Below the pieces are notes generated by a model that saw only the letters and a program-made list of their open reading frames with translations, ran no database searches and was not told where the DNA came from. From assembly GCA_037447605.1 (NCBI GenBank), contig CM074811.1, positions 1,488,001 to 1,552,000 of the forward strand: DNA of 64,000 bases. The letters are read 5' to 3'. Origin of the DNA: Zygnema circumcarinatum SAG 698-1b (Eukaryota; Plantae; Zygnematophyceae). How positions within the stretch are numbered: position 1 is the stretch's first letter; every line of letters begins with the position of its first letter. The translations under genes were made by a program, and so were the position numbers. This document shows, piece after piece, positions 2 through 41,370 of the stretch.

Positions 2-2617
2 ATCACCTTTCTTGATGATTGCTCAAGGAAAGTATGGGTGAAAACGCTCACCAAGAAATCGGAAGCTTTTCAGGCCTTCAAGGAGTGGCAGCTGCAGGCC
101 GAGAGGGAGACAGGGATGAAACTAAAAACTCTAAGGTCAGACAATGGTGGAGAGTACACTTCTCACCAGTTTAGAGATTACCTGAAGTCCCTCGGAGTGA
201 AACATGAGTTCACTGCCCCTTACTCTCCTCAAAGTAACGGAGCTGCTGAGAGGATGAATAGGACGCTAGGAGATATGGCAAGGACTATGCTGAATGAGTC
301 GCCATTTCCGCTATCGTTTTGGGCTGAGGCGATCACGGCGGCAGCGTATATTCGGAACAGGTGCCCTACATCTGTCTTGAAGGATAAAGTTCCGGAGGAA
401 GTGTGGACAGGCAAGAAGCCGACTGTTGAGCACTTTCGAGTTTGGGGCTCAAAGTGCTTTATTCACGTTCCAAAGCACAAGCAAGCGCAGAAGTTCAGTC
501 CTCGATCTGTGGAAGGATACTTCCTTGGCTACAATGAAGATAGCCAGACTTACCGGATCTGGAACCCAGTCACAAAGAAGGTGGAAAGGAGTCGTGACAT
601 AATTGTGCAAGAATTCCACAAGTATTCAGAGAAGCTGGATGGAGAGAAGGACGTGAACACGAGAAGGCTTGTGTTTCCATGGGTTCCAGAAGATTCAGGA
701 AGGGCTGAGGAAGCAGCATTACCACGGCCAGATATTCAGCATAGCCCACCGATGGAGCATGTCACTAATCCGCTAGATTCTGTACCTGAGGAGGGACCGC
801 TTGAGGAGGAAGCACCCGAGGAGGAGGAGCCATCAGCGGACTTGCAGGTGCAGCCAGCAAAGGAGTCAGGAGAGAGGCAAGGATTCACTCCAAACTATGA
901 GAACAGGAGTGATCGTCCAAGGAGGCAACCTGGTTGGTTGGCAGACTACCACCAACCACCATATTGGAAGGCAAAAAGGACGAAGAAGGTCAGAACACCT
1001 AGTGACTCAGCTGACTTTGCTGGCATTGCTGCGTGCATGATGGCTCATATTTCAGAACCTCAGAGTTATGCGGAAGCTTTGCAGGGTGAGGATGCTGAAA
1101 AGTGGAGGGCAGCAATAGATAGTGAGCTGAATAGTTTGAAAGTAAATGGAACCTGGAGATTGGAGGAGCTTCCTAAGGGTAGGAAGGCTATAGGCTGCAA
1201 ATGGGTGTTTAAGGTGAAGCGGAAGGCAGATGGGAGCGTAGATCGCTACAAGGCCAGGCTGGTTGCAAAGGGGTATAGCCAGAAAGAGGGCATTGATTAT
1301 TCGGAGACTTTTGCACCAGTGGTTAAGTTCAATTCCCTTAGATCACTCATTTCGATTGCAGCAGCGGAGAGAATGCATGTCCATCAACTTGATATAAAGA
1401 CTGCATTCCTCTATGGAGATCTAAGTGAGGAGATTTATATGGAGCAGCCGGAAGGCACAGTGGTGGAAGGACAAGAACATCTCGTATGCAGGCTGGTAAA
1501 GAGTCTTTACGGCCTCAAGCAAGCACCCCGGATTTGGTACCAGAAGATAGATGATCTTTTACGGAGGAATGGATACAAGCGGTTTGAGTCAGACCACTCC
1601 GTCTACAGTAAAGGTACCGGGAAGGAGCTGCTATACGTGGGCATTTACGTGGACGATCTGATCATTGTAAGTTCCTCCATGCAAAGCATTCAAAGTCTGA
1701 AGGATTTGATGAAGGAGAACTTCCAGATGACAGATTTAGGAGAGGCCCAATATCTGTTGGGAATTCAGCTCAAGAGGGGGCGAGATGGTAGTTTGTTCCT
1801 TTGCCAAGAGAAGTACGCTAAGGATGTCCTAGCGAAGTTCAGAATGGACAAGTGCACTCCATGCACAAGTCCCATGGATATGTCACAGAGGCTTTCAGAA
1901 TCCATGTCACCCCAGTCTCAAGAGGAGGCGAAGAAGATGGAGAATGTACCATACAGGTCTGCCATTGGAAGCCTGATGTACCTGATGATTGGCACGAGGC
2001 CAGATCTTGCTAAGGCGGTCAGCGCAGCCAGCAGGTACATGCAGTTCCCTGGGGAGCGGCATTGGGAGGCGGTGAAGAGAATATTCAGGTTTCTGAAGGG
2101 GACTGTGGACTATGGGATTAAGTTTGAGGCAGGGAGTGGAAGTCAAGTGTATGGTTATACGGATGCAGATTGGGGAGGGGATGTAGACACTGCTAGATCC
2201 ACCTCAGGATACGCATTTGTGAACAGCGGAGGAGTTGTGACTTGGAGCTCGAAGCTTCAAGATTCTGTGGCGCTTTCAAGCACTGAGGCGGAGTATATGG
2301 CAGCCTGCCATGCAGCCAAGGAGGCCGTCTGGCTGCAGCAATTCTTCGAAGAGTGTGAGCGGCCCCAACTCCCTTTGAGGCTGTTAACTGATAACCAGTC
2401 TTCTATGACTCTAATGCAGAATCCTGTTTTTCATAAGAGGTCAAAGCATATCAGGATTCAATATCACTTTGTCCGTGAACTTGTTGTTGAAGGAAGGATA
2501 GCTGTGGATTTTGTGCCTACAAAGGATCAAGCAGCTGACATGCTCACTAAGGGGGTCAATGGGGAGGCGCTGTGGAAGAACAGCATGCTTCTAGGATTGG
2601 GGCCTCTTAAGAACTAA
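2..2617 (+). CDS. Copia Pol polyprotein, C-terminal part, open with no stops
   Basis: The frame is open from base 2 (ITFLDDCSRKVW). It has the integrase motifs LDD, RSDNGGEY and NGAAERMNRTL, an SH3-like YFLGY...YRIWNP segment, RT motifs KARLVAKGY, LYGLKQAPR and YVDDL, and RNase H motifs YTDADW, STEAEY, DNQS and ADMLTK. Confidence 0.97.
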   Translation: MTFLDDCSRKVWVKTLTKKSEAFQAFKEWQLQAERETGMKLKTLRSDNGGEYTSHQFRDYLKSLGVKHEFTAPYSPQSNGAAERMNRTLGDMARTMLNESPFPLSFWAEAITAAAYIRNRCPTSVLKDKVPEEVWTGKKPTVEHFRVWGSKCFIHVPKHKQAQKFSPRSVEGYFLGYNEDSQTYRIWNPVTKKVERSRDIIVQEFHKYSEKLDGEKDVNTRRLVFPWVPEDSGRAEEAALPRPDIQHSPPMEHVTNPLDSVPEEGPLEEEAPEEEEPSADLQVQPAKESGERQGFTPNYENRSDRPRRQPGWLADYHQPPYWKAKRTKKVRTPSDSADFAGIAACMMAHISEPQSYAEALQGEDAEKWRAAIDSELNSLKVNGTWRLEELPKGRKAIGCKWVFKVKRKADGSVDRYKARLVAKGYSQKEGIDYSETFAPVVKFNSLRSLISIAAAERMHVHQLDIKTAFLYGDLSEEIYMEQPEGTVVEGQEHLVCRLVKSLYGLKQAPRIWYQKIDDLLRRNGYKRFESDHSVYSKGTGKELLYVGIYVDDLIIVSSSMQSIQSLKDLMKENFQMTDLGEAQYLLGIQLKRGRDGSLFLCQEKYAKDVLAKFRMDKCTPCTSPMDMSQRLSESMSPQSQEEAKKMENVPYRSAIGSLMYLMIGTRPDLAKAVSAASRYMQFPGERHWEAVKRIFRFLKGTVDYGIKFEAGSGSQVYGYTDADWGGDVDTARSTSGYAFVNSGGVVTWSSKLQDSVALSSTEAEYMAACHAAKEAVWLQQFFEECERPQLPLRLLTDNQSSMTLMQNPVFHKRSKHIRIQYHFVRELVVEGRIAVDFVPTKDQAADMLTKGVNGEALWKNSMLLGLGPLKN

Positions 2618-5055: not shown

Positions 5056-5267
5056 GCATTCCGCATTCCCCATTCCGCATTTCCCATTCCGCATTCGGCA
5101 TTCCGCATTCCGCATTCTGCCTCCCTTGCACCTGCTCCAGCCTCCCTTGCCTTTGCCCCTTGTTGTGTTGCCCTTGCCTCTGTCTTCCTTGCCTTGTGCC
5201 CCTCGTTCCTTTGCTTATGCTTCTGTTGTGTGTATGATTGTATGTCATTCCTCCCTCTCCCTATTAA

Positions 5268-5338
5268 GTTGAAGTGGCGAATTGGTTACGCAACTGTTGC
5301 AAAACAGTAATAAAGGGGTTCAAATCCCCTCTTCAACT
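5268..5338 (+). tRNA. tRNA-Cys(GCA)-like cloverleaf, copy 1, with a non-canonical anticodon loop; function unproven
   Basis: Acceptor stem GTTGAAG/CTTCAAC is 7/7 paired. U8 is present. The D arm is GCG-AATTGGTTA-CGC, the anticodon arm ACTGT-TGCAAA-ACAGT, the variable loop AATAA, and the T arm AGGGG-TTCAAAT-CCCCT (5/5). The discriminator is T and T-runs follow downstream. Confidence 0.6.
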
Positions 5339-5710
5339 TGTAGTGTTTATTCACTTTTCTATTTTTATTTATTTAAACTTTTTGTGTTTTGGCTTCATAT
5401 GCCAAATATTTGTTGTTATTTTTTTTTAGTTGTTTTTATTCTATCTATCTATTCTTTATTCTATATTTTATCCTATCTGCTGCGGCTGTTGCTCTTGCTG
5501 CTGTTGCAGCATTCATTTTTTTTGTTTTTGATGCTGCATTTTGCAATACGCATTTTGCCTCCCTTGCACCTGCCCCAGCCTCCTTTGCCTTTGCCCCTTG
5601 TTGTGTTGCCCTTGCCTTTGTCTTCTTTGCCTTTGCTTGTGCCCCTCATTCCTTTGCTTATGCTATTGTTGTGTGTATGATTGTATGTCATTCCTCCCTC
5701 TCCCCATTAA

Positions 5711-5789: not shown

Positions 5790-5968
5790 TGTAGTGTTTT
5801 TTTATTCTTGTATTTTTATTTATTTAAAGTTTTTGTGTTTTTGCTTTATATGCCAAACATTTGTTGGTATTTTTTTTAGTTGTTGTTATTGCTTTTTACC
5901 ATCTCCTTCAAAACTTTGAATTGGGTTGTTGTTGTAGCGCAATTTAGAACATTGGATACGCTTCTCCC

Positions 5969-6499: not shown

Positions 6500-6920
6500 C
6501 AATCTCATCAATTGAAACAAATAAAGGTAAAAAGCAAAAAAGACAACAAAAAAATAACAACAAATATTTGACATATGAAGCAAAAACACAAAAACTATAA
6601 ATGAATAAAAATAGAATAAACACTACAAGTCGAAGAGGGAATTTGAACCCTTTTATTACTGTTTCGCAATCGTTGCGTAACCAATCCACCACTTCAACTT
6701 AATTGGAAGGGGAGGAATAACATACACTCATACACAACACAAGCATAGGCAAAGGAACTGGAGGCGGTAGACTGAGGCAAGGGAGGCAAAATGCAGAATG
6801 CAGAATGCGGAATGCGGAATGCTGAATAGGGAATGCGGAATGCAGAATGTAGCAGCAAAAAAAAAAGCATGCTGCAACAGCAATAGCAGTTCAGCGATAG
6901 CAGCAATAGTTGTTTTTATA
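6500..6920 (-). repeat. Third, inverted and more diverged copy of the ~430-bp unit
   Basis: The reverse complement reproduces (GCATTCC)n, the CT-rich segment, the cloverleaf and the T-rich tail. Confidence 0.9.
6628..6698 (-). tRNA. tRNA-like cloverleaf, copy 3, degenerate
   Basis: The reverse complement reads GTTGAAG TG GTGGATTGGTTACGC A ACGATTGCGAAACAGT AATAA AAGGGTTCAAATTCCCT CTTCGAC T. Confidence 0.4.
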
Positions 6921-7002
6921 ACAAGAGAAAAACCTGTTTTTTTTTTTTTTTATGAGCGCGCGCGGATTCGTAGGGAGAGAGAGAGAGAGAGAGAGAGAGA
7001 GG

Positions 7003-9139
7003 AATATTTTGTCTGCCCGCCCCGCCGTGAAGCGATTTTTGAGTTCGAACTCGGGCGGAGAGTGAGATCAGCCCATGTGGACTCCACCGACAAATTCCAA
7101 AACGACAAGTAAATGTACAATCATTCGTACACATGTACCCGCGAGTTGCCCGAGCCAGCTGGCGCGTCCCCAGTGGTCGGTGTGGGATGGGGTAGGGGCC
7201 CTGAAATTTTCCCTGCCCGCCACTGGCATCCCCGGAGGGGCGACAATTCGGCCTGCGATTAGGGTTGGGAGGAGCTTTCTTCCCTCTCTCCCTCTGCCTC
7301 TTCCGCAGGCAGGCAGGCAGCCAGCCAGCCATGGCGCAGGCCTGCGCAAGTCTCCTTCGTCGCCGGGGATTTGAATTTGAATGGCATGTGTAGTAAGGAT
7401 GTTTTAGTTCAGGGTAGGGGGAAGAATGCAGAATATGTAGGATTGAGGCATGGAAAGGGGGAGTGGGAGTGGGAGATAGCGTTGGTGTGAGAGAGGAGTG
7501 GGTTTGGAGGGAAAGGGAAAGCAGAATGGCGTCGAGAGGCTCGGGAGTGGAGACTCTGAAGGAGAGGCGCGTGGAGGACATGGCTTCGAAGGAGGCTGCA
7601 GCGAAGTTCAACTCTGCTGCGGCTTTCGTGGAGTCGGGAGTGCAGGAGGTCTATGAAGATGCCTGCAGTATTTGTCTGGAAACGTTCACAGAAGAGGAGC
7701 CGCTCACTGTAAGTTCGAAGGTCCTTTTAGATAGCTACATGATGGGAGTGATTTGCTCGTAACATGTGGTCATCGTTTCTAGCGTATGAGTTAGTGGGTA
7801 CTGATGCTCTGGATAGTTATCTGGCTCAAGGGTTTGTGCAAGCAGGCGATAATGCTTCTTGGGTTGTGGAAACCTTATGGAATTGAGAAGTGTTTGGGCT
7901 TACGTGGGCGCCATGTTTGGCAGTCGGTGCTGATGCAAAATTAGTACAGTGACTCGGTTCAAACGCTTTTGAACGGAATTTTGGTTATGTCTAACATCTC
8001 TGAAAGGTCGTTCTCGCCACTTTTCGTTTCTTTGCAGCTGACGACTTGCAACCACGATTACCACCTACAATGCATTTTAGAATGGTGAGAGCAGCATATC
8101 TCTGGAGGGTTGTGCGTTGTTAGTATGTGTCCATGATTATTTTTTGGATTGATACTTTCGGAGGTTCTAGAAATTTATGCACCACGCATAAATTTCTTTC
8201 AATCATTATCACTGTCACTTCAGTTGTTCTTTTTTATTTCATTTCATATTGTTATGCTTACCTCATCTCAACGAGTCGACTTTAGCGGAAAGTAGACCCG
8301 CAGTTTCGAACTGGTTTGAACGGCGTACTGAGGGTGGGAGGTGGTCGGGAATGACCTTTTAATTTTTTATTTTGTGTGCCTGGTTTTGTATGCCATGGCG
8401 GTCGACCTACTGAACATATTCTAGCATCAGTAGAGACAGCATCAAGTAATGTTTGAAGGACAGAAATGCTAGCGTTTTTTTCTGCAGGCAGACGCTTGTT
8501 CTGCTGTGTACTGAAGTGTTTAGATTATCTACATCAATATAGCGAAAGGAATTGACTGGAAGGGAGTGTCATTACGCTTTACTGTATTGCATCGTGTACT
8601 TCTCGTGGTTAGGTAATGAAAGTGGGGCACCCCTAAAGACGTGGTCTGCATGACAAGGGTTAGCTGTGATTCTGGCGGCACTTCGCTGCTTCACATACTT
8701 CCTCGTTTGAAGCGTTATTCTTTTGCTTGTGGTGGATTTCAGGGCAAAGCGGGGACAGGAATGCCCTATGTGCTGGCAGCCCCTCAGTCTGAAGGACCCT
8801 GAGAGGTATGTTGAACTTGAACCTGCGCAGAATCAGTGCGTTTCTTTGTGGTGCAGAATTACGATGCAGCCATAGTTTGCGAGTCCAGACTGGTCAGACA
8901 TAACGAGCAATTCAGCGTTGTTGCTGTTGCAAAATCGGAGCAGTTCAAGCCATTCTTGTTCGTTCGCTTTATTATTTAGTTGACTGTGTCCCCATTTTTG
9001 TTTCGGCGTGTTTTTGCAGTCAAGAGCTACTCGCCGCTTGCTTCCAAGAGCAGGCCTTTCATGCAAGTTCTGTATATACACCTCCGTTTATGCGCTCGCC
9101 ATTTGAGGAGTTCGAGTTTCAGCCCAAAGTGCGATTCAA
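7003..9139 (+). repeat. Segmental duplicate of 10847-13052 (promoter and exons 1-4 of the RING-H2 gene)
   Basis: Exons and introns 1-3 are near-identical by eye. Similarity ends just after GTGCGATTCAAC in both copies. Confidence 0.95.
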
Positions 9140-9818
9140 CCGCTCTGAACCACCACCACCCTTGCCAAAGGTCATGGAAGATTTGGCGAGAAGGGAAGAT
9201 GCGAGAGCAGCGTCTCCCACAGAATCGGGGCAGTCTATGTCGCTTGTATCGGGCTCTACTGTCTCAGGCCCATTACCCTCAAAAAAGAAGATTCCCCGAG
9301 ACGCAGAATTCCAGGATCTAAGACGCAGAATTCCTCGAGTTTCGCCTCCGGATCCCACTCCATCTGTCCCAGAAGCGGCCGCTGACTCTACACCACAGTA
9401 CATCACTGTTGAGGAGGGGATTCGCCTCAACCGTAAGGTGAAGGAGCTGGAAGCAAAGGTCGAGGAGTTGGAGGTCGTGATCCGCTCCCAAGTGAGCAAG
9501 ATGGATCAGCTCGAACTCACTGTTCGGCGCATGGTAGACGAGCTGCAGGGGGGGTTTCAACAGGACGTTGTAGACGCAAGGAAGGAAGCAAAAGGTACGG
9601 CAGACGTGGGTGATTCAAAGGAAGAGCAGGAAGGACCCCCTCCGTTCCCAAAGCCCGAGGTGAAAGATTACCAGAAAAGGAAAAATTCTGCAACTTTCAG
9701 CCCCCAGCCACCTGCAAAGATGCAAAAGCTTACTCCGCAAGAGACAAAAAGGCTGCGAAAAGAAAATCGTTGTTTCCGATGCCAGCAAAGAGGTCATATA
9801 GCCAAGGATTGTAAATAA
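7526..9818 (+). CDS. Chimeric RING-H2 plus coiled-coil plus CCHC zinc-knuckle protein, 363 aa predicted; exons 7526-7708, 8038-8084, 8743-8805, 9020-9818
   Basis: Splice sites are GT-AG and identical to the parent gene. The C3H2C3 RING is complete (CSIC...CNHDYHLQC...CPMC). Exon 4 stays open through to KLTPQETKRLRKENRCFRCQQRGHIAKDCK*. Confidence 0.7.
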
Positions 9819-10800
9819 GCCTGGAAAGACCAAAAGGGCAAGGGGTCAGAAAATGGATCACCATTGGCAAGTTAAGAGTCACTGCGAGTAAGGAAGACAG
9901 ACTAAGGGTTAGGGCTGCTGCCATCATAAATAGAGGTTTTATTTTACTAAAGACTTTAGACACTGTAAAAATGATATGCAAACAAGTTGATGAGCACGAC
10001 ATGTTTCTGACTAGTCTTGCATATCTTGATTCGTGCCTATTCTCAACTGCCTTAATTGTGACTCCTGTATCTTTCTTGAATGTTGTGATGTATGGCAGCT
10101 GGGTTGTTTGGATCTTCAATCCCATGGTTGATGTCAATCTTGTTGAATGTACATTAGATGTTTTGCGTCTATTACGCACTTTTGGGAACATTGTTGCCTT
10201 GCATGTGTTGGTTCCCTAGTATGTTGCTATTACGACCTTTAGCCACATCAGGACAAGGGGACAAGGGGGTGTTGGTGGGGGGTGGGAGTACCTCACTTCC
10301 TATGACATCTCGCACTGGTAGGAACCCAATGTCGGGAAGTTGCTGCATGCTCGTCCTCATCTTCTGCTCCTCCTTGGTGTTCTCTTCAACTTTAAGGTCA
10401 CCACTACACATGACCTTTTGTGTGGAGGGATTCCATACCCGATATTTCAAGCTGTCGGTATTGTAGCCGAGGAAGTATTCGAACTCTCTTCCACAAAGTG
10501 TCGAAGCGGCTGTTGGGGTTGAACCCGAAGTGCCGCATGCGGGGGAGCCGCAGATTTCGACGGAAACGGTTCCAGTACACACACAACTGTTAGACGAGGA
10601 GAACTCAGTGGAGACAGTGTTGTTGCACAAACAGGAGTCTGGGGATTTGGAAATGGCGGAAAGGTCCCCTTTGCGACCAGTCGTCCTCCGTGGTTCCACA
10701 TCATGCTTTTGTCCATGTACATTTGATGGCCTTGCCATCGTGAGTTCAATGAAATTCCCTTTTCCACCCTCTTTCTTTTCTTTTTTTCATTAGTAGCCAT
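9140..10800. mobile_element. Mosaic of retroelement remnants between the two RING copies
   Basis: A Gypsy-Gag-like CX2CX4HX4C tail lies on the plus strand (9700-9818). The minus strand (about 10385-10480) encodes YFLGYNTDSLKYRVWNPSTQKVMCSGDLKVEE, homologous to YFLGYNEDSQTYRIWNPVTKKVERSRDIIVQE in the Copia Pol at the window start. Confidence 0.7.
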
Positions 10801-11478
10801 GGATCCACACTAAAGCGGATGTTTATGGATTTGTAAATATTATGAAAAATATTTTTTCTGCCCTCCCCTCCGTGAAGCGATTTGTTTTGTACTGTAATTG
10901 AGTTTCTCCGGCGGGGGCGAGAGCGGCCCACGTGGACTCCACCGACAGATTACAAGACGACAAGTAAATGAACAAAGCTCCGTACATGTGTACGGTGTCC
11001 GATGCCGGCGATGGCGGCTGCGGCCGAACATGACGCAACCGTACGGCCGTTGAAATCGTCACTTTTTTCGGGCAGGTCGAGTGAGCTCGAAGCTTCCTTG
11101 CGCTGCCCATGCCAGCTGGCGCGTCCCCAGTGGTCGGTGTGGGAGGGGGAACGAGCCCTGAAATTTTCCTTGCCCCCGTTGTCCCCCCGCCAAGATGGAA
11201 CAGGGGCGACATTTCGGTCTGCGATTAGGGTTGGCCGGTGCCTCTTTCTCCCTCGCCCACTTCCCGCAGGCAGGCAGGCAGCCATGGCGGAGGCCTGCGC
11301 CCGTCTCCTTCGTCGCCGAGGCTTTGAATGTGTATGGCATGTGGAGTAAGGATGTTTAAGTACAGGGTAGGGGGAAGAATGCAGAATATGGAGGATTGAG
11401 GCATGGAAAGGGGGAGTGGGAGTGGGAGATAGCGTTGGTGTGAGAGAGGAGTGGGTTTGGAGGGAAAGGGAAAGCAGA

Positions 11479-14400
11479 ATGGCGTCGACAGGCTCAGAAG
11501 TGCAGACTCCAAAGAAGGAGGGCCGCGTGGAGGACATGGCTTCGAAGGAGGCTGCAGCGAAGTTCAACTCTGCTGCGGCTTTCGTGGAGTCGGGAGTGCA
11601 GGAGGTCTATGAAGATGCCTGCAGTATTTGTCTGGAAACGTTCACAGAAGAAGAGCCGCTCACTGTAAGTTCGAAGGTCCTTTTAGATAGCTACATGATG
11701 GGAGTGATTTGCTCGTAACATGTGGTCATCGTTTCTAGCGTATGAGTTAGTGGGTACTGATGCTCTGGATAGTTATCTGGCTCAAGGGTTTGTGCAAGCA
11801 GGCGATAATGCTTCTTGGGTTGTGGAAACCTTATGGAATTGAGAAGTGTTTGGGCTTACGTGGGTGCCATGTTTGGCAGTCGGTGCTGATGCAAAATTAG
11901 TACAGTGACTCGGGTCAAACGCTTTTGAACGGAATTTGGTTATGTCTAACATCTCTGAAAGGCCGTTCTCGCCACTTTTCGTTTCCTTGCAGCTGACGAC
12001 TTGCAACCACGATTACCACCTACAATGCATTTTAGAATGGTGAGAGCAGCATATCTCTGTAGGGTTGTGCGTTGTTAGTATGTGTCCATGATTATTTTTT
12101 GGATTGATACTTTCGGAGGTTCTAGAAATTTATGCACCACGCATAAATTTCTTTCAATCATTATCACTGTCACTTCAGTTGTTCTTTTTTCTTTCATTTC
12201 ATATTGTCATGCTTACCTCGTCTCAACGAGTTGACTTTAGCGGAAAGTAGACCCGCAGTTTCGAACTGGTCTGAACGGCGTACTGAGGGTGGGAGGTGGT
12301 CGGGAATGACCTTCATTTTTTATTTTGTGTGCCTGGTTTTGTATGCCATGGCGGTCGACCTACTGAACATATTCTAACATCAGTAGAGACAGCATCAAGT
12401 AATGTTTGAAGGACAGAAATGCTAGTGTTTTTTTCTGCAGGCAGATACTTGTTCTGCTGTGTACTGAAGTGTTTAGATTATCTACATCAATATAGCGAAG
12501 GGAGTGTCAGTACGCTGTGGTTAGGTAGTGAATGAGAGGCACCCCTAAAGACGTGGTCTGCATGACAAGGGTTATCTGTGATTCTAGTGGCACTTCGCTG
12601 CTTCACAATACTTCCTCGTTTGAAGCGTTATTTTTTCGCTTGTGGTGGATTTCAGGGCACAGCGACGACAGGAATGCCCTATGTGCTGGCAGCCCCTCAG
12701 TCTGAAGGACCCTGAGAGGTATGTTGAACTTGAACCTGCGCAGAATCAGTGCGTTTCTTTGTGGTGCAGAATTACTATGCAGCCATAGTTTGCGGGTCAA
12801 GACTGGTCAGACATAACGAGCAATTCAGCGTTGTTGCTGTTGCAAAATCGGAGCAGTTTAGGGCATTCTTGTTCGTTCGCTTTACTGTCTAGTTGACCGC
12901 GTCCCCATTTTGTTTCGGCGTGTTTTTGCAGTCAAGAGCTACTCGCCGCTTGCTCCCAAGAGCAGGCCTTTCATGCAAGTTCTGTATATACACCTCCGTT
13001 TATGCGCTCGCCATTTGAGGAGTTCGAGTTTCAGCACAGAGTGCGATTCAACTTTATCCTTAGGGTGAAGCGGAGTGAAGAATTGATGAAGTCTAAAAGT
13101 AGCAATGTGTGATAGATGCTATTTGTCATACTTTGCGACTAGTGCATGCTTGCTATCTGCGATCTTTCTGTGACTTCCAAAGTTGGATTCCTTCCTGCAA
13201 ACTGTCACTCGTTTTCCAGGCCCTTTAGTCTCGTTTTCTTGTACGAGGCTGACCCGAATGTGGACCGTTGTTTTTCTTTTCTCAGCAGTATTCTTCATCT
13301 TATCCAGAAGAAGCCGACTTGGAACGTCGAATCATGCAACACTTAGCAGCTGCAGCAGCTGGGATGTCTCGAGCACGCCTTGTCAGTAGCAGCCGCTCCC
13401 CTGCAAGACATGGACAAAATTTAGGAGGACAACAGACGACCCTCATTCCTGCTGATCGATCGCTGCCAAGTCCTCGGATTACGAATACAGCAATTCAGAC
13501 TGGCACACTTGTGGTTGGAAGTGATAGCAGGATATCTTCCCCAGATTCAGGGAGCAGGGGAAGTACAACCAGCAGCTTATCTTCGATGCTGAGACCGTCT
13601 GCAAGTGTCCCTGTTGAGACTAGTGATGTGGGAGGCTCTGGCCAGCAGGGTGTGCAAGGGGAGGCCATTTTGCATGCTGTATCATCTCCCCCAATGTTAG
13701 GTGGTCTCAGCCGCACAGGCTCTCAAACAATGGCAATTGGACAGAGTGGGCCACTTTTTGGCTTGGCGAGAACATCTTCAGCAGGATCGGGATTTCAGAG
13801 CGTTAAAGCAGAGGCGGGTGGGAGCGGCAGCAGCAGTCAGAATCGAAGTCCAACTTTGGACAGCCGCGAGAGTAGCAGCACCCAGAGGTCAGTGGCTTTA
13901 GGCTTGGTCTCTAAGCTTCTTGTCTTGTTTTGGAAGTTGTAGTACTGGTCGAAAAGAGAAACATTTGGTTCATCCACTTCACTCGATTCTTTCTCATCGT
14001 CTCCGAGATGACCACTCTCCTCCCAAGTTGACCTATTTATAGATTATGTTGATGCATTGGCTGGCCAACGCAGTGAATCGGACCAACTCGCTAGACAGGC
14101 CTTAAGCTGAGGCGACCATTTATATATCACTAATTAGTGTTAGAGTTGGCTCGTCAGCAAAAAAGTGTATAAATTATGTATTCTGTACTGTATAGTTTCT
14201 AGGGGAGCCATGCTTGTCTCAATCGCTCCCAAACATCTGTTCAACGGCCCACAGGTCGCTTTTGGAACAATTATGTTGTTTGTACTCTGCACTTTGGAAC
14301 GACCTCAGACAAGGTATATTCAGTTTGTGCAAAGTTACAAGTTGAGGGGTCGATAGTAATAGCCTTATCATCTGGCTAGGGCTTGGCCGAGGGCTAACAT

Positions 14401-21500: not shown

Positions 21501-24500
21501 CTCTATCAGCAAAGGTAAATCAGAGTATTTGTGTGTACGTGGTGCTTTAGACGGTCGAGGTCTTACGAACTCAGTGTCTTTGTCTTAGCAGAATTCACAT
21601 ACTTTATTGTTGTGTTTGCAGCTATGGCTTTCCTTAATTCCTGTGGTGCGGCTTGAGAAGAAGCTCCGTGTGCTTCGTTTCCGAAGTTTCTTGGCTGAAC
21701 GGGTGAGGACGTTTCTCGTATTGCAATTGTGTTTCGCCGAGGTTATGAGCTCTCTTCTGCAGATACTTCGGTATCGAATTAACTTTGAATAATGCGCAAA
21801 TATCTTCAGCTAGAGCAGTTTCTTGTAATGATGGTTGTCACCTACGTGGTAATGGGGCATGCGTCACTACGGGCCGGTGCAGTTTCGCCGTTGAATTGCG
21901 GATTAATGATGATGATGTTGCTTCTAATATTTGTGCTTTTGGATTGCTTTTGATTGGCGACAGGCTCGTCCTGTAGAGGACAAGATCAAGTTCGTGATTT
22001 CCATGTCTCAAAAGGTATGTGGCTACATCACTGCAGTGATCGTTTCCAGACGTGAGCATGCTTTCAGAGCCTCTTTAGAATTGTAAAATCACCAAGTCTC
22101 AATCGAGTATAGTTGTCCTAACTTGTCGAAATGGGCCATATTCTCGGTCACAAGTACGCGTCACATCCTTTCTGGTGATTTTTTTGCATATTATTTAGCC
22201 TTCACCACTCCATACTAGACACGATTTAAAGCATATTTGATGGAAGCCCTCAAGCACTTTTGTGGCGGTTCAGTCATACCTGCAAGCCTTCAAATAGCTT
22301 GCTAACTGAAAGGATTCCTAGCTGAAAATGCTTTTAAGCATGCAATTTGTGGCGTATTTCATCGTCGGCTATATAAATTCTGCCTGCATGAGCATATAGA
22401 CCTTCTTGCTTCATGCATACGATAGATTTGCAAGCTTAGTCTGGTCTCTCTTGCGTTGATCTTCCTCAGTTGTGTCAGCCTGATGGGCTTATTGCGAGAG
22501 ACTACTGTGAGTGAGAATCTCTTCTCAACTAGCATGCTCATCTGCTTGGAAGTTATCTGATCAGCCCCCTCGCTTCTTTGCAGGTGCAAGGCTCCCAGAA
22601 GTTGCCGGCAGTTCTTCGCGTGGTTCTTGCTATCGGCAACAAGCTGAATCAGGGAACAAACAGAGGTTTGCCTCCAAGCAACCGGTAGTGTGTTTCAGGC
22701 TTGCCTGCGTACAATGGGGAGGGGGGAAAGGAAGGGGGAGGGAGGTGTTGTAAGGGGGGCTGGGGGGGAGGGTGGAGAGAGAGGATAAGGACGAATGGCT
22801 GAGACTGTTACATGAGTTACACGAGTATCATGTGTTACATGATACTGAGTTGCATGCCGAGTTTTCCATAGCTGGCCCTTTGTCGTCCAAAAGTTGCCCT
22901 CTAAGTATGTCTGCTTATGCAGCAGATTAGAGCCAGACCAAAGGCAGGGAATTCGTTTTAAATGCAGTTCTGCCCCTAATTTGTGAGCCGGTTTTGACAT
23001 ACTGCATCTCGTTCAGTACTAGGACCTCTGTCCGTCTGCATGTAGTTTTTTCTTTTTGGGATTTGTTCCTTTCCGTCGTTTTTCTGACAATTTTCAATGG
23101 ATGGTTCGTCGTGACCCATTTTTTACTTTGGGATTGATGGTTCATGGGATAACAGCGAAGGCAAAAGGTATCACCCCAGAAGACCTCATCATTGCCGGCC
23201 GCACTAAAGGCTTCATGCAGTACCTTTGTAAGGTGCGTACGACAGATGCTGGAGAGCCTTATCATTTCTTCTTTAGAAGCTCACAAGGGGAAGTCGACAG
23301 GCTGTAGAAGCCATAAAGGTCTTACTTCTGTTCTTCTATGCATGTTTTCCACAATTGCGTGGAAGTGTTCAACTGATGTGGACTGCTTCTGATCCATTGT
23401 ATGCTATCATTCTCCGTCATGAATTGAAACAAGCTTCTGAAATGCAAAACAGCACTGCTAGGCTTTCGGCCTTAGGCCGCTGAAGGTGCCATTGATCACA
23501 AGATGCTGACGTCATTATGTGTCATGTCATGCATGTTTCTGCTCTGATGGGTCGCATCGCAACAGGTTGTGGCGGAGCGGCGGTCGGAACTGCTCGATTT
23601 TTGGGAAGAGTTTGTGGACGAGGGGAGAAATCTGCTGGCGGACACATTGAAGGTGGGCTTTCCCCTTGATGGTAGAATTCACCATATCGTTTGTTTGGGT
23701 TCGAGTGTGTGTGGTCTTGACTCGGATTAGAAAGCACGTCCGTTCAAAGCTGTTGTTTGAACTTGTGACCCTATTGAAGGACAGACGAAGGTTAGTGTCA
23801 AGAAATAGAGGGAATTACTTTTTGCAGAGCATCTGCACGATGGTTTCCACCTTCGCTTAGGCAATATCTAGGAGATTTTTTTGTGGTGGATTGTCGTTGT
23901 GCCTTAGTGAGGTTTTTGGATGGTTGTAGACAGTGCAGGGATGATTTTGCAAGCCTGCCTTTTTTTTTTCAGCGTGTGCAATATTGCTGCCATCTCGTGG
24001 GCAGGTTGACAGAGATGGCCTTGAATCGCAAGTGAAGGAATTGGAGAAGGGTATGGTGGAGGTAGTGGAGGAGTTAGGGAAGCTGAAGGAGGAAAAGGAG
24101 GCAGATGATGTTGAATTTGCTTCTAGAGAGAGAGAAAAGATGACTTGTGAGGATGAGAATGGAAAGCGACGTAGACAGGAAGAGGATTTGAGGAAGGCTG
24201 CTGAGACTGAAAAGATGCTGGTAGAGGATATGCGGGTGAAGAAGGAGAGGGCAGAAGAGCAGGCGAGGCAAGGTAAGGAGAGAGCAGCGATGGAATGGGA
24301 AGATAATGAAGGTCGGAAGAGGTTGGAAGGGGATTGGCTCAAAAGGAGGAAAGAAACAGCGTTCATGTTCTTAGAAGATCGGGAAGTCGAAAGGGAGAGG
24401 GTGTCTCTGCTTTTTCTGGAAAAAGTGGAAAAGAGGAGGCAGGAACATGAGGAGATGTTGAGGAGATTGGAGGAGGCTGCTAGGGAAGAGGCGGAACGGC

Positions 24501-27500
24501 TGGAAAGAGAGAGATTGGAAAGGGAGAGGATGGAGCAAGAAGAGAAGGAAAGGAAGGAGGAGGAGGAAAGGGTGAGGAGAGTGAGGCTGGAAGAGGAGGA
24601 AAGGGAGAGGAAGGAGAAGGAAGAAAGGGACAGACGTGAAAAGGAGGAGAAAGAAAGGCAAGAGAGGGAGGAGGAGGAGAGACTTGAAAAGGAGAGAGAG
24701 GAAGCGAAGAGGTTGGAGGAGGAGTTGAGGGAGAAGGAAGAAAGGGATAGGTTAGAACGAGAGGAAGAAGAAAGGAAGCAACTGGAAGAAAAAGAGAGAT
24801 TAGACAGAGAAGAAAGAGATGGAGCTTTGGCACTCCTTCAGCAAAAGTTGAAAAGTGGAGAAATTAAGGTTATGCAAGATAGGGACAGCAGCCAAGATAC
24901 AAAAGGCAAAGCCAAACTTGTTGATATTAGCTTAGAAAAGGAGACAATGATAGACATGGATTTTAGCCCGGAGATGGAGGAATGGGGGGAAACTAACTAT
25001 GAATTGGCCCGAACCGGCAATAAAAACCAGAATATAGTGGCTCAGAGCTTGGCCGTTTGGCTGAATGGTCAATACAAGGAAGTGGACGACGAATCTGTCC
25101 CTCCCCATGAGGGACAGTTTGAGACCAAAAAATGTGACGTGATTTCGGACGGGTTACAGGATGTGAGCGGGGAAGTTCGAATGCAGCCTATGAACGGTTT
25201 GGAGCTCTCGTTTTCAAGCTTTATTGAGCAGAATGGAGATCATAAAAAGGACTCGGCTGTAGAATTGGCCGGAAAAGGGGAACAGCATGTCGAGGCACTT
25301 GAAAGAAGTTCAGGGGATTTGAATGGGCATAGTCAGCGGGAGGCAAAAGTCGAAGGAGAGAGTATTAGGGGCGAAAGCACAGCGACTTTTCTGGAAGGTA
25401 TGAAGGTTGAAGAGGTTAGCTCCGGTGTACCAGAAAATAATGGAACCGAACGTGGACAAGGTTCTGCTCAGATTCCTGATGGTGGAGTGCAAATGCAAGC
25501 TGTGACAGGGAATGGTGGGGGTCAGCACAGAGAGGAGGCCGTGACCAGTAATGGAGGTAGTGCAGAAGGTATAGAGAAAGCAAAAGAAGAAGTGGTAGAG
25601 GAAGAGGAGACTGTGGAGCAGAGGAATGCAAGGCAGGAAAGAGAGTGGCAAGAAGAGGCAGAGCGGGAGAGGAAAGAGGCAGAAGAGAGGCATGAACGGG
25701 AGAATGCTAACAGAGAACAGCGTGCCAAGGAGAGGCAGGAACGCATGGAGAAGGCAAGGAAAGAGGCTGAGGAACGTGCAAAGCAAGAGAAGTTAGAGCA
25801 AGAGCTGAGCATTGTAAGGGAATGGAAGCGCCATAGAGCAGACGTGGATTCTCGGGCCGAGACATTTTGGGTGAGTCTGTCGATTGCTTTTTACCAGAAA
25901 ACGGTATTATTCTTTGCACCTTTTCCATTCACGAGGTCTGTCTGATTTCGGCCCCGGCTGACTTTACCACACTTTATCGCATTCACGGTAAAGTTTGCCT
26001 TTGAAAGCTGATTGTGCTCTGTATGGGTGCATGCTCCTTTTATCTTTTTGTGAATGCAGGCGGTGGAAGCGTTTTATCTGCAGGAAGTTGAACCGACAGT
26101 GAATCATCTCCGGCAAGTCATGGGTCATTTGGTGAGATGTTCTCAGAGTGCTCTGTTTCTAACGTCGCATGCGTTACAACGTGACATTGTCTAGGACAGG
26201 TCAACATCTGGTAGAGAGGGGAGGCTTTGATGCTATCAAATTTTCTTGCCATTCATTTGAGAAAAAGGGGAGAGTCAGCGGCTCTCGAAAGTTTAGCTTT
26301 TAAATTTCAAAGAGGTTTGGCCTCCGTTTGCTCTTCTGGGCAGGGTGAAACTTCAAATGCGCTGGCAAAGTACTTTGGAGTGGACCCGAAGACTCCTTGT
26401 ACTGAAAGTGAGCACTTTCCTTTCCTATGAACTTCAGATTGGAATAGTTCGGGCTGGACCAGTGCGTCTGACTGCAAGTGAAGTTCGTTCTCTAGTCCAA
26501 TTGTTATACGTGAGGCGGCTCACACAATAAAACTGCTGGGGATACAATAGCATTTCAAAGCACATTTAGAGGGAGGCGATCCTTATCAGACTTGACACGC
26601 ATGTGAAGAAGTTGGATGGTTGGAGCTGGTGCATTGCGAGATTGCAAGTGATGAAAAAGCAAAGTGTTATTTGATTCTCGTGTTAACGAGTGTGTGTCTG
26701 TGTTTTTCCTGATTGAGCAGTTTTCAATGTCCTATACGACTTCATTGAACTGTTTAAGAAGGCTAAAATTGAGAACGAGAATCGAAAGAAGGCAGAAGCG
26801 GAGAAGACACGGAAGCAGGCGGAATTGGAGGCTCGGAGAAAGCGGGCAGAGGAGAATAAAAAGAAGCTTCAAGAGCAGGAGCTGAGACGGAAGAGGTCAG
26901 TGGACATTGGAAGAGAGAGTATGCTTAAGGATAACGCGGAGAGAAGAGACATGTCTCCGTCTCCTATCAGTATACCCAGTAGGAGCCCTTCACCGTCCAT
27001 CTTCTCCCCCATCACGACGCCCGGAGGTGATACACCCTCCACACACTCCACCTATTCACCTTTCGCTTCTTTGTCCCCCATTGGCTCTCCTATGCTCCGA
27101 AGCCCATCTCAGACACCCCCTCATACATCTCCCAGGGGTTCGGTAGCAATGTCGGCATCCTATCCATGGTCAATTGATGCTCTCGGAAGTGTTCCCTCAG
27201 CTCCGTCCTCTTCGGGATCTGTAGCCTCTCCTGCAGGAACCCCTTCTCCAAACTCCCTTCTTTTGTCCAGTCCTGCCTTAGACAAATTCAGGAAGCGGGC
27301 TATGTCGAAGGAATCGGACTCATCGGACGACGACTTTGATGAGGAGAGGCCCAGAAAGGCTCGTCTCCATGTGGGGCTTCGCGTGAACGGCAGCGTGCAA
27401 ACTATAACACCCCCTCATTTGGACCACTCTTTGAGTGCCCCTGGGCGGGTGGAAGAGTTCAAGAAGGCACGAGTCAGACATGCTCTGAACGGCAAGGCTA

Positions 27501-27931
27501 ACGGCATCTTGCATTCACAGCTCGCTGGAAAGGGAGAGGGTTACAGTCTTCTCCGTGCAGTGGTTATGCAAGAGACCAGGACGATTAGAGCGGAGGACTC
27601 TCCACAGGGGCCGTCACAGACGTCACTGTTAGTTGCCTATTGCCTTTGTATATACTGGCTGGTAAGCCCTACTTTCTTCAAACGAGCAAGAAAACGACTG
27701 GCGTCCAGGAAAGTCCTGGAATTTGGTCAACAGCTGTCCTTGTCTGAGAGGCCCTCTGCTGCTTATGATACGGCTTCAAGCAGCAGCTCTTTACCGGTTT
27801 CTTCCCACTCCCCTTCTGCGCCTTTCCTCCCCATCCAGCCTTCAGTGTCTCGGAAATCAAGACTTTCGAGGAGCGTCAGCTACGCAGAGGATTTGGAAGA
27901 GGAGGGCGACATGAGTGATGCTGCCAGCTAG
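18512..27931 (+). CDS. Formin (FH1-FH2), 1403 aa, 14 exons: 18512-18801, 19511-19619, 20149-20220, 20561-20668, 21165-21206, 21622-21702, 21964-22014, 22584-22665, 23156-23232, 23566-23652, 24005-25870, 26060-26131, 26344-26407, 26721-27931
   Basis: A polyproline FH1 is followed by FH2 motifs LQWK...SLW, KKAQNLEI, PSKDEAAKLKEYKG...LGPAEQ, VLAIGNKLNQGT, MQYLCK, YFGVDP and LYDFIELFKKAKIEN. All junctions are GT-AG and in phase. Confidence 0.9.
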
Positions 27932-29749: not shown

Positions 29750-30232
29750 CTTGGGAGGGAGGGGGGAAGGGAGAGGGGAGGGAGAGGGAGAGGAAGGGAG
29801 AGGGGAGGGAGAGGGAGAGGAAGGGAGGGANNNNNNNNNNGGGAGGGGGAGGGAGGGAGGGGGGAGGGAGAGGGGAGGGAGAGAGAGGGAGAGAGGGAGG
29901 GAGGGCGGGAGCGGAGGGGGAGGGAGAGGGAGGGAGGGAAGGCGGGAGGGGTGGAGGGGGAGGGAGAGGGGGAGGGAGGGAGAGAGGGGAGGTAGAGAGG
30001 GCTGGAAATTGGGGAAGGGAGAGGGATAAGGGGACGGAGGGAGAGAGGGAGGGAGAGGGGGACGGAGGGAGAGGGAGGGAGGGCGGGAGAGCAGGAAAAG
30101 GGGAGGGAGAGGGGGACGGAGGGATATTGGGAGGGGGGGGCGGGAGAGCGGGGAAGGGGGAGGGAGAGGGGGAGGGAAAGAGGGAGGGAGTGCGGGAGGG
30201 GGGGGAGGGGGAAAGGGGCGGGGGAGAGGAAA
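29750..30232. repeat. Polypurine (GGGAGA-like) tract containing a 10-N assembly gap at 29831-29840
   Basis: Directly visible. Confidence 0.95.
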
Positions 30233-30295: not shown

Positions 30296-33030
30296 ATGGC
30301 TCCAAGCTCGCGGTTTGCGGTTGTGTTTGACAATGCTTCTTTCTCGGACAGAGTGCTGAGTTGGAGGACTTGCCTTTCGGAAGCAGAGGGGGAAGGAGGT
30401 AAGGCTTTGCTTCTGCGGAAACCCTTTTGTGCTGAAAAAAAACAAGAGGAAATGCTCTTGCAGCTGCTGCGTGTTTTTCTTAATTTTAACTCGGTAAGAT
30501 ATTGGGTTTGACATCGAACAAGCTTTTAAGTGATAAACACAGCGGAAGGAAGTGCTGCATCACTTGATTTGGTCTACATGGGCCGTGGAAAAGTGTGGAA
30601 TTAGTGCTCTCTTTGTGGTTTCCTTGCATACAGATTATGGAATTGAAGCTTCCAGACTCATTTTGGGTGGCCATGGCGGTCCCATACATGTCAGCCGAGC
30701 CGTGCTGGCTGCTGCCTCTCCCTACTTTGAAAAGCTCTTTTCGTGCGGCATGAAGGAGTCCTGCTCCGATGATGGGGAGATCACCCTCGTAGTCTCTCCC
30801 GAAGGTTAGTCGAATTTTGTTATTTGAATTTCCTTTTTGTCGGAAGCGGCTAGGTTGATCACTCACTGGCCATTCCGAAAGATTGGAATATTGGAGGCTA
30901 GGCGGAGGAGAGAGGACTAGCAAATACTAGTAAGAAGAGTAAAAGGGTGAAAATGGATGGAGGGAGAGGAGAGGGAGAGGGGAGAGGAGAGGGGAGGGAG
31001 GGAGAGGGGAGAGGGAGAGGGAGAGGGAGAGGGGAGAGGGGAGAGGGGAGAGGGGAGGGGAGAGGGGAGAGAGGGGAGAGGGGAGAGGGAGAGGGAGAGG
31101 GGAGAGGGGAGAGGGGAGAGGGGAGAGGGGAGAGGGGAGAGGGGAGAGAGGGGAGAGGGAGAGGGGAGAGGGGAGAGGAGGAGGAGAGGGGAGGAGAGGG
31201 GAGAGGGGAGAGGGGAGAGGGGAGAGGGAGAGGGAGAGGGGAGGAGGGGAGAGGGAGAGGGGAGAGGGAGAGGGGAGAGGGGAGAGGGAGGAGGGGAGAG
31301 GGAGAGGGAGAGGGAGAGGGGAGAGGGGAGAGGGGAGAGGGGAGAGGGGAGAGGGAGAGGGAGGGAGAGGGAGAGGGAGAGGGAGAGGGAGAGGGGAGAG
31401 GAGAGGAGGAGGGAGAGGAGAGGGAGGAGGGGAGAGGGGAGAGGGAGAGGGAGAGGGGAGAGGGAGAGGGAGAGGGGAGAGGGGAGAGGGGAGAGGGAGA
31501 GGGGAGAGGGGAGAGGGAGAGGGAGGAGGGGAGAGGGGAGGAGGGGAGAGGGGAGGAGGGGAGAGGGAGAGGGAGAGGGAAGCGGTCAAGAGGGGAAGCG
31601 GTCAAGAGGGGAAGCGGTCAAGAGGGGAAGCGGTCAAGAGGGGAAGCGGTCAAGAGGGGAAGCGGTCAAGAGGGGAAGCGGTCAAGAGGGGAAGCGTTCA
31701 AGAGGGGAAGCGATCAAGAGGGGAAGCGGTCAAGAGGGGAAGCGGTCAAGAGGGAGAATGGAGGGAGAGGGGATTTTTTTCGAGAGAGGCGAGGGGCGGG
31801 AGCATGACATGCATGTCGACAGGATGACTTACTTGCAACTGTGCATTATATCGATGCAGCTTGAGTTATGAATTCCGGAAGGTCGAGCTGTGCCGACTGC
31901 TCGAAATTAATCGATGTTTGCTTGATTGGGGGGCTTTCACAGAGGGTGAGCAGATGAGAACGTTTTTATTCTTTTGCTATACAGAAACGTTGCCGTCCAG
32001 GCTGAGTCAGGACGCGCTTTTAAGTCTGTTGTCTTTGGGCAACAGATTTGAGGTGCCTCTGTGTGTACACTGCAGCTGCTCCAAACTGTTACCGTTGAGG
32101 CTGGACATAGCGCAGAGCTTGGCTCTCTTGAATATGGGAGAGTCGCTCTGTCATCACGAGTGTTTCAACGACTTGCTTGATTCAGACTGCATGGCGGCTG
32201 ACCTTTGGGACTTTGAAAGCTTTAGTAAGTCACGAGCTTTTTTGGACCTAAATTCGAGTGGAGTGGCACAATACCTTCAAAGAAAAGCGATTGTTGTTGA
32301 ATCGGAGCAGGATGTATTCAAGGCAGTGGTGACCTGGGCCGATCGTAAATGTGTCGACGCACTGCATCGACAAGAGCTGCTGAGGAAACTGCTCCCGTTT
32401 GTGCACTTTCCTGCAATGGACGGCGAATTTTTGCAGTCTAGTGTTGCCGTTTTGCCAGAAATGAGGACTTTGGAGGGAATGACTTTGCTGGTAGAAGCAC
32501 TCGCTTACAAGAGCAGCAACTTACAGAGGCAGAGGGAGATAGCCTCAGGAGGTGTACGAGATGCAGCCTGGTATAGGGAAAGGATTAGCAGGAAACCATC
32601 TGCACAAGTGGTCAGTTTGCCTGATGACATTGATGCGACGGCGTACGGTTTACCTGGACACTATTACATGATGGTGAGGTTCAGAAAAGCTCAATTGGAG
32701 GCTTTGGGACAAGAGGGGAAAGTTACCTCGAAGTGGTGCAGCATCTGCGGAGTGGAGTTCAGTCTTGAGGTTTGGCGGCAGAAGTCATTCTTTCACTGGA
32801 GTTTGAAGGGGAGGTATCTTCAAGGGAAAGACTCGTTGAAAACTGTGAAGGCTTCTCTGGCTGCAAGGAATCTGATGTCAGCTCAACAGTTGATGACATT
32901 TGAAAACAAAGCAGAGAATGAGATGAACTTTCCTGACTTCTTCCTCGGCAGTGTAGAAGATATACTCCGGTCAACCCGAATGTTCAACAGTGGTGTGCTG
33001 CTAGTGATTGCCAACTTAGAAATCAGGTAG
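30296..33030 (+). CDS. BTB/POZ-BACK protein, divergent LRB/POB1-like CUL3 adaptor, 453 aa; exons 30296-30398, 30634-30804, 31943-33030
   Basis: BTB: [11 protein letters not shown] and [30 protein letters not shown]: [15 protein letters not shown]...[10 protein letters not shown]. Phases are consistent. Confidence 0.85.
30955..31575. repeat. (GGGGAGA/GGGAGA)n polypurine satellite in BTB intron 2
   Basis: About 620 bp containing only G and A. Confidence 0.97.
31575..31752. repeat. 16-bp minisatellite (AGGGGAAGCGGTCAAG) x about 11
   Basis: Directly visible. The 16-aa period in the ORF track equals three units. Confidence 0.95.
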
Positions 33031-41000: not shown

Positions 41001-41370
41001 GGGAGGTACAGGTATCACTCCCATGTATCAGATCATCCAAGCAATTGTGAAGGACCCGGAGGACGAAACAGAGGTTTGGCTCATCTTTGCGAACAGAACC
41101 CACAAGGACATTTTGTTGCAGGAAGACTTGGATGAGTGGGCGAATAACCATAAAAACATTCACATTTGGTATACAATTGAGTCGCCGGGCCCTGCGGGGT
41201 GGCAGTATAGCACGGGTCGCATGTGCGAGCAGATGTTGAGAGAGCACCTCCCTGCAGGAGGGGAGGAAGCGTACGCTTTCATGTGCGGGCCGCCGGGAAT
41301 GATCAAGTTTGCATGCATACCGAATTTGGAGATTATGGGGTATCCGGCAGACCATATGCTCACGTTTTAA
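38001..41370 (+). CDS. NIA: Assimilatory nitrate reductase, 900 aa; exons 38001-39000, 39290-39430, 39623-39855, 40042-41370
   Basis: Moco domain: [29 protein letters not shown]. Dimerisation domain: WCWVFW. Cytochrome b5: [21 protein letters not shown]: [17 protein letters not shown]. Phases are consistent. Confidence 0.98.

Follow-up and report, generated by a model that had tools for sequence, protein, structure and literature searches.

Chimeric genes produced by partial duplication are well known from Drosophila, with jingwei and Sdic as examples, and in animals a RING domain is joined to a retroelement-binding module in some TRIM proteins: TRIM5alpha and TRIMCyp each carry a RING, a B-box, a coiled coil and a capsid binder, and TRIMCyp arose by retroposition of CypA. 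Here we describe a locus of the alga Zygnema circumcarinatum SAG 698-1b, within a stretch of 64,000 nucleotides of contig CM074811.1 (hereafter the window), in which the 5' part of a putative RING-H2 E3 ligase gene has been duplicated in tandem and now runs, in frame, into retrotransposon debris that ends in a Gag-type zinc knuckle. This young chimeric open reading frame (ORF), associated with transposable element (TE) sequence, is real. We read it, with a probability of roughly 55%, as the neutral by-product of a TE-associated rearrangement, in which case it would be a proto-gene or a pseudogene but no established gene.

Two further systems provide a context. The functions of the Arabidopsis RING-H2 E3 ligases RHF1a and RHF2a have been reported (PMC2651519, PMC3410867), and gene fragments captured by plant long terminal repeat (LTR) elements have been described (PMC3726574). 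Like chimeric duplicates and pseudogenes that carry TE sequence, the locus presented here consists of a 5' gene fragment, complete with introns and upstream DNA, joined to an unrelated new 3' coding end with its own stop. Unlike the LTR-captured fragments, however, the copy does not lie inside a recognisable TE and has no terminal inverted repeats (TIRs) or LTRs at its flanks; it is a local tandem duplication with TE-derived filler.

Direct-repeat and pairwise analyses revealed that positions 7003-9140 (the copy) are a partial tandem duplicate of positions 10848-13052 (the parent), with 77-99% identity depending on the segment. The copy starts with about 520 nt of upstream sequence and then has the ATG, exons 1 to 4, three intact introns and all eight RING-H2 ligands. 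The initial annotation, made from the letters of the window, had listed the same start codon, introns and ligands, and both the exon model and the exon translations bear it out. The GT and AG ends are kept at every intron in copy and parent alike and the intron phases are identical; the four copy exons (183, 47, 63 and 109 nt) make up 134 codons and end in phase 0. The parts of the two units are as follows.

7003-7525 (+): duplicated upstream region with the putative promoter and 5' untranslated region, aligned to parent 10848-11478
7003-7312 (+): outer part of the upstream region, 77% identical to the parent, with many gaps
7313-7525 (+): inner part of the upstream region, 94% identical to the parent
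7526-7708 (+): copy exon 1, 61 codons, with the ATG and the first RING ligand pair, CSIC; 95.6% identity, donor gtaagt intact
Between exons 7526-7708 and 8038-8084 (+): copy intron 1, 98.8% identical to the parent
8038-8084 (+): copy exon 2, RING ligands C3, H4, H5 and C6, translation LTTCNHDYHLQCILE; 100% identical to the parent
Between exons 8038-8084 and 8743-8805 (+): copy intron 2, 96.6% identity
8743-8805 (+): copy exon 3, RING ligands C7 and C8 (CPMC), translation AKRGQECPMCWQPLSLKDPE against AQRRQE... in the parent; 95% identity
Between exons 8743-8805 and 9020-9128 (+): copy intron 3, 95% identity
9020-9128 (+): copy exon 4, phase 0 end, 97% identity, three nonsynonymous differences from the parent
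9129-9140 (+): first 12 nt of the old intron 4 and last duplicated stretch, 12/12 identical to parent 13041-13052, with the unchanged GT donor gtgcgattcaac
10848-13052 (+): parent unit, exons 11479-11664, 11993-12039, 12656-12718 and 12932-13040
13286-13888 (+): parent exon 5, which has no counterpart in the copy; 200 codons without a stop, containing ERRIMQHLAAAAAG

The copy follows the parent through position 9140 (parent 13052), which lies 12 nt into parent intron 4, and beyond this breakpoint the two sequences are unrelated. The initial annotation implied that the splice donor of exon 4 had been lost in the copy, which proved incorrect: gtgcga is intact, the parent reading AGA/gtgcga and the copy AAA/gtgcga, with positions +1 to +12 unchanged. 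Near the donor the copy departs from the parent only within the exon, at -5 (A>C, 9124) and -2 (G>A, 9127). Since the donor is unchanged in the copy, readthrough from exon 4 into the sequence beyond it is an assumption.

The frame itself is open. From 8904 the exon-4 frame continues to a TAA at 9816-9818, giving 229 codons past exon 4 and 225 past the breakpoint; the figure of about 225 stop-free codons given at the outset was thus accurate, and the peptides quoted with it are present in the translation. With the exon lengths above, the readthrough model amounts to 134 + 229 = 363 codons. At about 52% GC, chance is an unlikely source of a 242-codon ORF. Furthermore, the codon log-likelihood is +0.15 bit per codon in the exon-4 frame, against -0.21 and -0.32 in the other two, and is comparable to that of the other coding ORFs of the window. 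The in-frame join would be expected by chance about once in three to once in five, so that a selective explanation for it is unneeded.

Three features favour readthrough: the parent acceptor and the rest of intron 4 are gone in the copy, the composition past the donor is exon-like, and there is no acceptor nearby. For 9129-9818 the T fraction is 0.18 and the GC fraction 0.52, as against T 0.32-0.36 and GC 0.42-0.45 in the five measured introns of the RING-H2 gene, and a simple scan found no pyrimidine-tract acceptor at 9160-10390. The minus strand of 9143-9155, directly at the breakpoint, has the sequence TGGTTCAGAGCG, which we take to be, minus one base, the tRNA-iMet primer-binding site common in plant LTR elements. 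It fits no element here, and may be a coincidence or a trace of the rearrangement.

The RING-H2 module is complete in both units. Exon-by-exon translation gives the ligand set CSIC, 14 residues, C-N-H-DY-H-LQ-C, 10 residues, CPMC, which is the same in copy and parent, and the spacing in the copy, C-x2-C-x14-C-x-H-x2-H-x2-C-x10-C-x2-C, agrees with the RING-H2 pattern C-x2-C-x(9-39)-C-x(1-3)-H-x(2-3)-H-x2-C-x(4-48)-C-x2-C. When exon 1 was compared by itself with Pfam, zf-RING_11 fell below threshold (E 0.0088; 16.2 bits against a cut-off of 27), the domain being split over three exons. The module is of the plant RING-H2 E3 ligase type, with ubiquitin ligase activity as a prediction. We presume, as a lead only, that the parent resembles the RHF1a/RHF2a group; the motifs AAAFVE...CSICLE, HLQCILEW, CPMCWQ..SLKDP and, in exon 5, QHLAAAAA are presumably RHF-like. 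On that assumption the copy shares with RHF1a and RHF2a an N-terminal RING-H2 of equal ligand spacing and differs from them in having only the first 134 codons, without the whole C-terminal part that includes the QHLAAAAA region. A word search with the parent exon-5 ORF gave no match among proteins of 123-392 aa, a length window that probably excluded full-length relatives.

Past the breakpoint, the reading frame falls into an orphan part and a recognisable Gag tail.

9141-9683 (+): orphan coding-like stretch in the exon-4 frame, a P/S-rich low-confidence part followed by a long helix
9408-9596 (+): predicted long helix, a coiled-coil candidate of six heptads (AlphaFold2, single sequence; residues 130-192 of the piece 9021-9815)
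9684-9815 (+): Ty3/gypsy Gag C-terminal tail (hhalign against a profile of nine Gag relatives: probability 98.7%, E 1.7e-16, residues 182-225 only)
9768-9815 (+): single CCHC zinc knuckle (Pfam PF00098 zf-CCHC, E 1.3e-5, above the gathering score)
9816-9818 (+): TAA stop, one codon after the knuckle

The HMMER and profile check of the C-terminal part that the initial annotation had proposed recovered the Gag tail only. Against 1.84 billion representative proteins HMMER returned 27 matches, all confined to the last 20-55 residues of the stretch. Those scanned matches that were continuous over about residues 170-225 are Gag proteins in which a knuckle follows the Retrotrans_gag and Ty3_capsid domains, and their tails (KLTPEER.RL..E.RCFRC...GH...DC) share 46-55% identity with the last 44-55 residues. 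A LINE (long interspersed nuclear element) ORF1 was also considered as a source of the tail and rejected, the scanned continuous-match relatives being Ty3/gypsy Gag proteins with capsid domains. In one relative, P0009 (locus L002), gag lies directly upstream of an ORF for protease, reverse transcriptase, RNaseH and integrase, stops 8 codons past the knuckle and overlaps the pol start. The TAA at 9816-9818 is probably the gag fragment's own stop.

No capsid was recognisable in the 3' part of the copy: Pfam gave neither Retrotrans_gag (PF03732) nor Ty3_capsid (PF19259), and hhalign aligned the tail only. A sequence search of the Protein Data Bank yielded only marginal matches to retroviral nucleocapsid knuckles, with E about 0.05. 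A degenerate, frameshifted capsid upstream of the knuckle was sought by tblastn with at least nine Gag relatives and rejected, since there was no match upstream of 9621 in any frame save for P0003, a protein with eight knuckle-type matches that gave a single weak alignment of 25% identity from 9384. Likewise, pol after the stop was rejected; tblastn with the relatives' pol ORFs found no homology downstream. LTR-like direct repeats around the Gag tail were also absent. Compared with Ty3/gypsy (Metaviridae-type) Gag proteins, the copy thus has the CCHC tail with family-typical flanks and a stop soon after the knuckle, as in L002, and differs in having no capsid domain, downstream pol or LTRs, and in the 170 residues before the tail, which have no relative. 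Judged by these similarities, the 3' end represents part of a Ty3/gypsy Gag and not a whole Gag, so the early description of a Ty3/Gypsy nucleocapsid-type end with no recognisable capsid agrees with Pfam, HMMER and hhalign.

The orphan part is less readily placed. Residues 1-170 past the breakpoint (9141-9650) had no relative among the same 1.84 billion proteins by HMMER, and a word search with the 242-aa ORF found no match among proteins of 133-423 aa. Also, 9141-9683 contains no Pfam family and has no second copy in the window, its T fraction is that of an exon (0.18, against 0.34 for the introns), and megablast of 9141-9818 against plasmids gave no match, as expected. AlphaFold2 predicts the helix, some 60 residues long, with high confidence; the predicted local distance difference test score, in ten-residue blocks, is 97-98 over residues 131-170, then 90 and 85, and 58 over residues 191-200. 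The heptad a and d positions read from the translation are L V L V L I Q M L V M L. The AlphaFold2 model of 9021-9815 has no globular domain, and low-confidence P/S-rich segments flank the helix. Of the Gag-like coiled coil originally proposed, therefore, a coiled-coil-like helix stands on the model and the heptads, and the label Gag-like does not, since the stretch has no detectable relative, among Gag proteins or elsewhere. In the Gag relatives P0010 and P0027 the N-terminal segment before the capsid reads as helical and rich in alanine and glutamine. An internally deleted gag, though without similarity support, would be a reasonable source of 9141-9818.

The filler from the breakpoint to the parent unit measures 1.7 kb and has no other copy in the window. 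Beyond the stop it contains two further parts.

9819-10171 (no strand assigned): filler without recognisable content; all three forward frames are interrupted by stops, and nothing else in the window resembles it
10172-10738 (-): Ty1/copia-type integrase C-terminal fragment (Pfam PF25597 SH3_retrovirus, E 3.8e-7, in a minus-strand ORF)

An 859-aa Ty1/copia pol ORF at 38-2614 (+), with integrase core, SH3-like and RVT_2 domains, runs off the left end of the window and shows no similarity at the nucleotide level to the copia piece of 10172-10738. A Pack-MULE, a Helitron and an LTR element were each considered as a carrier of the duplicate and rejected, because neither TIRs nor LTRs flank 7003-10847 and the introns are retained.

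Taken together, the simplest description would be a local tandem duplication with a junction that either was filled by mixed retrotransposon debris or arose in it. The 5' module of a RING-H2 E3 ligase gene, with about 520 nt of upstream sequence and exons 1 to 4, would have been duplicated recently and within this lineage, and its 3' breakpoint, 12 nt inside intron 4, would have come to abut the 3' end of a Ty3/gypsy gag on the plus strand and a piece of copia integrase on the minus strand. The join would happen to be in frame, and the start of the filler would be, or would recently have been, coding, making exon 4 readable through 229 more codons. The hypothetical 363-residue product would begin with the RING-H2 and continue through a disordered linker, the six-heptad helix and a basic linker to the single CCHC knuckle, with the whole C-terminal part of the parent lost. 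Transcription from the duplicated promoter, if any, would make readthrough plausible, given the exon-like sequence downstream and its lack of a good acceptor over about 1.2 kb. An ORF recently inherited from a gag fragment would also stay open for some time without selection.

Exons of copy and parent differ by 14 substitutions in 402 nt (3.5%) and one codon indel, and introns by 36 substitutions in 1156 nt (3.1%). The Nei-Gojobori method, applied to the 132 codons lying wholly within exons and leaving open in which copy each change occurred, gave 11.5 nonsynonymous and 3.5 synonymous differences, with dN 0.038, dS 0.042 and dN/dS 0.89. Exon divergence close to intron divergence and a ratio of about 0.9 are what neutrality would predict, and with 15 changes this is a weak test.

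Divergence is also very uneven along the copy: identity with the parent is 77% at its 5' margin, reaches 94% ahead of the ATG, drops to about 82% over the opening 45 nt of exon 1, rises to 99% for 7571-8084 and is 95% near exon 3. The putative promoter is the least conserved portion. This pattern hints at a gene-conversion tract, a two-step history or faster decay of the upstream part.

Several observations weigh against a neutral by-product. The RING ligands, all splice sites and the 363-codon frame are intact, as they would be in a functional young gene, and a clean heptad helix followed by a knuckle makes a coherent architecture. Fifteen substitutions carry little power against moderate constraint, and of the eight substitutions in exon 1, which also has the one codon indel, seven fall within the first 15 codons, as weak constraint on the N-terminus could explain. 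Neutrality is the default and not a demonstrated state.

The strongest competitor is a new chimeric E3 ligase that functions: its transcription would start at the duplicated promoter and its reading frame would pass through the old donor, the RING would recruit an E2, the helix would oligomerise the protein and the knuckle would bind retrotransposon particles or RNA, making the product a TRIM-like restriction factor or decoy. We consider it unlikely, for all that it draws on the intact ATG, splice sites, ligands and 363-codon frame, on the high-confidence helix with regular heptads, on a bona fide Ty3/gypsy-type CCHC knuckle, on coding-like codon statistics, and on exon-like composition past the donor with no nearby acceptor. 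The dN/dS of about 0.9 in the shared exons speaks against it, as does the fact that recent inheritance from gag keeps the frame open with no need of selection. It has no capsid-binding or B-box module, and a lone knuckle is a weak and unspecific RNA binder, as is generally known of nucleocapsid proteins. No transcript, protein or orthologue of the copy was found in the public collections, and exact look-up of the ORF product returned no record; those collections lack this genome, which makes the absence uninformative. The junction 29-mer was absent from metagenome contigs.

The comparison with TRIM5alpha and TRIMCyp is instructive here. The predicted product of the copy would resemble them in its N-terminal RING, its coiled-coil-like helix and a retroelement-related C-terminal module acquired by genomic accident. 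Unlike the TRIM proteins, it has a RING of the H2 type (C3H2C3) in place of C3HC4 and only a single nucleocapsid knuckle, and an antiviral or anti-TE role would be conjecture. Neither the Pfam scan of 9090-9815 nor the exon translations contain a B-box, so the RING, B-box, coiled-coil order of TRIM (RBCC) proteins is absent. An expressed and selected, lineage-born E3 ligase, whose knuckle and coiled coil would bring the RING-H2 to retrotransposon RNA or Gag assemblies, would be by analogy a plant or algal counterpart of TRIM5/TRIMCyp or Fv1-type restriction, made from the target's own gag; we hold this to be very improbable. A new functional gene is thus a hypothesis, and its role as a restriction factor is speculation.

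A further alternative, which we regard as decidedly doubtful, is that the old donor at 9129 is still used. Exon 4 would then be spliced either from 9128 to the acceptor at 13285/13288 of parent exon 5, the copy serving as an alternative 5' module for a protein of normal length, or to a cryptic acceptor (e.g. 9700, 10396, 10793), giving a short truncated product without the knuckle. The gtgcga is the same as in the parent, and the G>A change at -2 even brings the site closer to the AG/GT consensus. Copy exon 4 and parent exon 5 are phase-compatible, both being phase 0, and there are candidate acceptors at 10396 and 10793/10796. Splicing to parent exon 5 would, however, require an intron of about 4.1 kb that holds a second promoter and four exons, as against 214-750 nt for the five measured introns, and the T-poor, exon-like sequence measured past the donor is of a kind disfavoured in plant-type intron recognition. 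Parent intron 4 itself ends in a tandem acceptor (cagcag, 13284-13288) with the choices 13285 and 13288, both phase 0 and one glutamine apart.

An assembly artefact, in which the tandem copy or the 9140/9141 junction would not exist in the genome, could be suspected in a window rich in repeats and TEs and is most improbable, given that the copies differ by 1-23% depending on the segment and by several indels, unlike a collapsed or doubled identical repeat, that the sole run of N (29831-29840) is about 20 kb away, and that the sequence on either side of the junction occurs only once in the window.

The surroundings of the neutral by-product that we favour, and the rest of the window, offered a number of other features. 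Just upstream of the duplicated unit a 7-nt unit (GGAATGC / AGAATGC) forms a short tandem array at 6781-6850 (+), and a (GA)n run at 6966-7001 adjoins the 5' duplication boundary. Long antisense ORFs of 231 aa (6916-7611, -) and 205 aa (10950-11567, -) overlie the upstream region and exon 1 of copy and parent, respectively; the G-rich composition of the plus strand probably accounts for them. At 5267-5339 (+) Rfam reports a tRNA with 51.7 bits, for which ARAGORN gives an undetermined type with a four-base anticodon (gcaa); this may be a TE-derived or degenerate tRNA-like sequence, and inverted repeats at 5805-5900 and 6526-6619 adjoin it. A gene for a nitrate reductase of plant/algal type, with at least two large exons, lies at about 38001-41370 (+), its Mo-cofactor part being encoded at 38001-39059 and its Cyt-b5, FAD and NAD domains at 39919-41367; its best public relative is 81% identical (a Logan transcript contig, run SRR8128902), and named land-plant and algal proteins are 40-57% identical. 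An ORF with a BACK domain (PF07707, E 1e-11) at 30957-33030 (+), just downstream of the 10-N run at 29831-29840, is probably part of a BTB-BACK gene. Additionally, several very long ORFs of 368-786 aa, rich either in E/R/K or in G/P/M and without any Pfam family, occur in 23984-27931 and 45346-51746 (+), where G strongly exceeds C, and may be large exons of low-complexity nuclear proteins.

To our knowledge the combination of a RING-H2 with a Gag nucleocapsid has no precedent, and our literature search found none for a RING-gag chimera. At present the locus can be called a well-defined structural variant that may serve as a marker and is a candidate for work at the RNA level; it is not evidence for a new function. 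If expressed, it would be a case of gene birth caught in the act, in which a partial duplicate gained a C-terminus, a stop and a nucleic-acid-binding module from retrotransposon debris in a poorly covered lineage, and would point to gag having been co-opted by a host against retroelements outside the animals.

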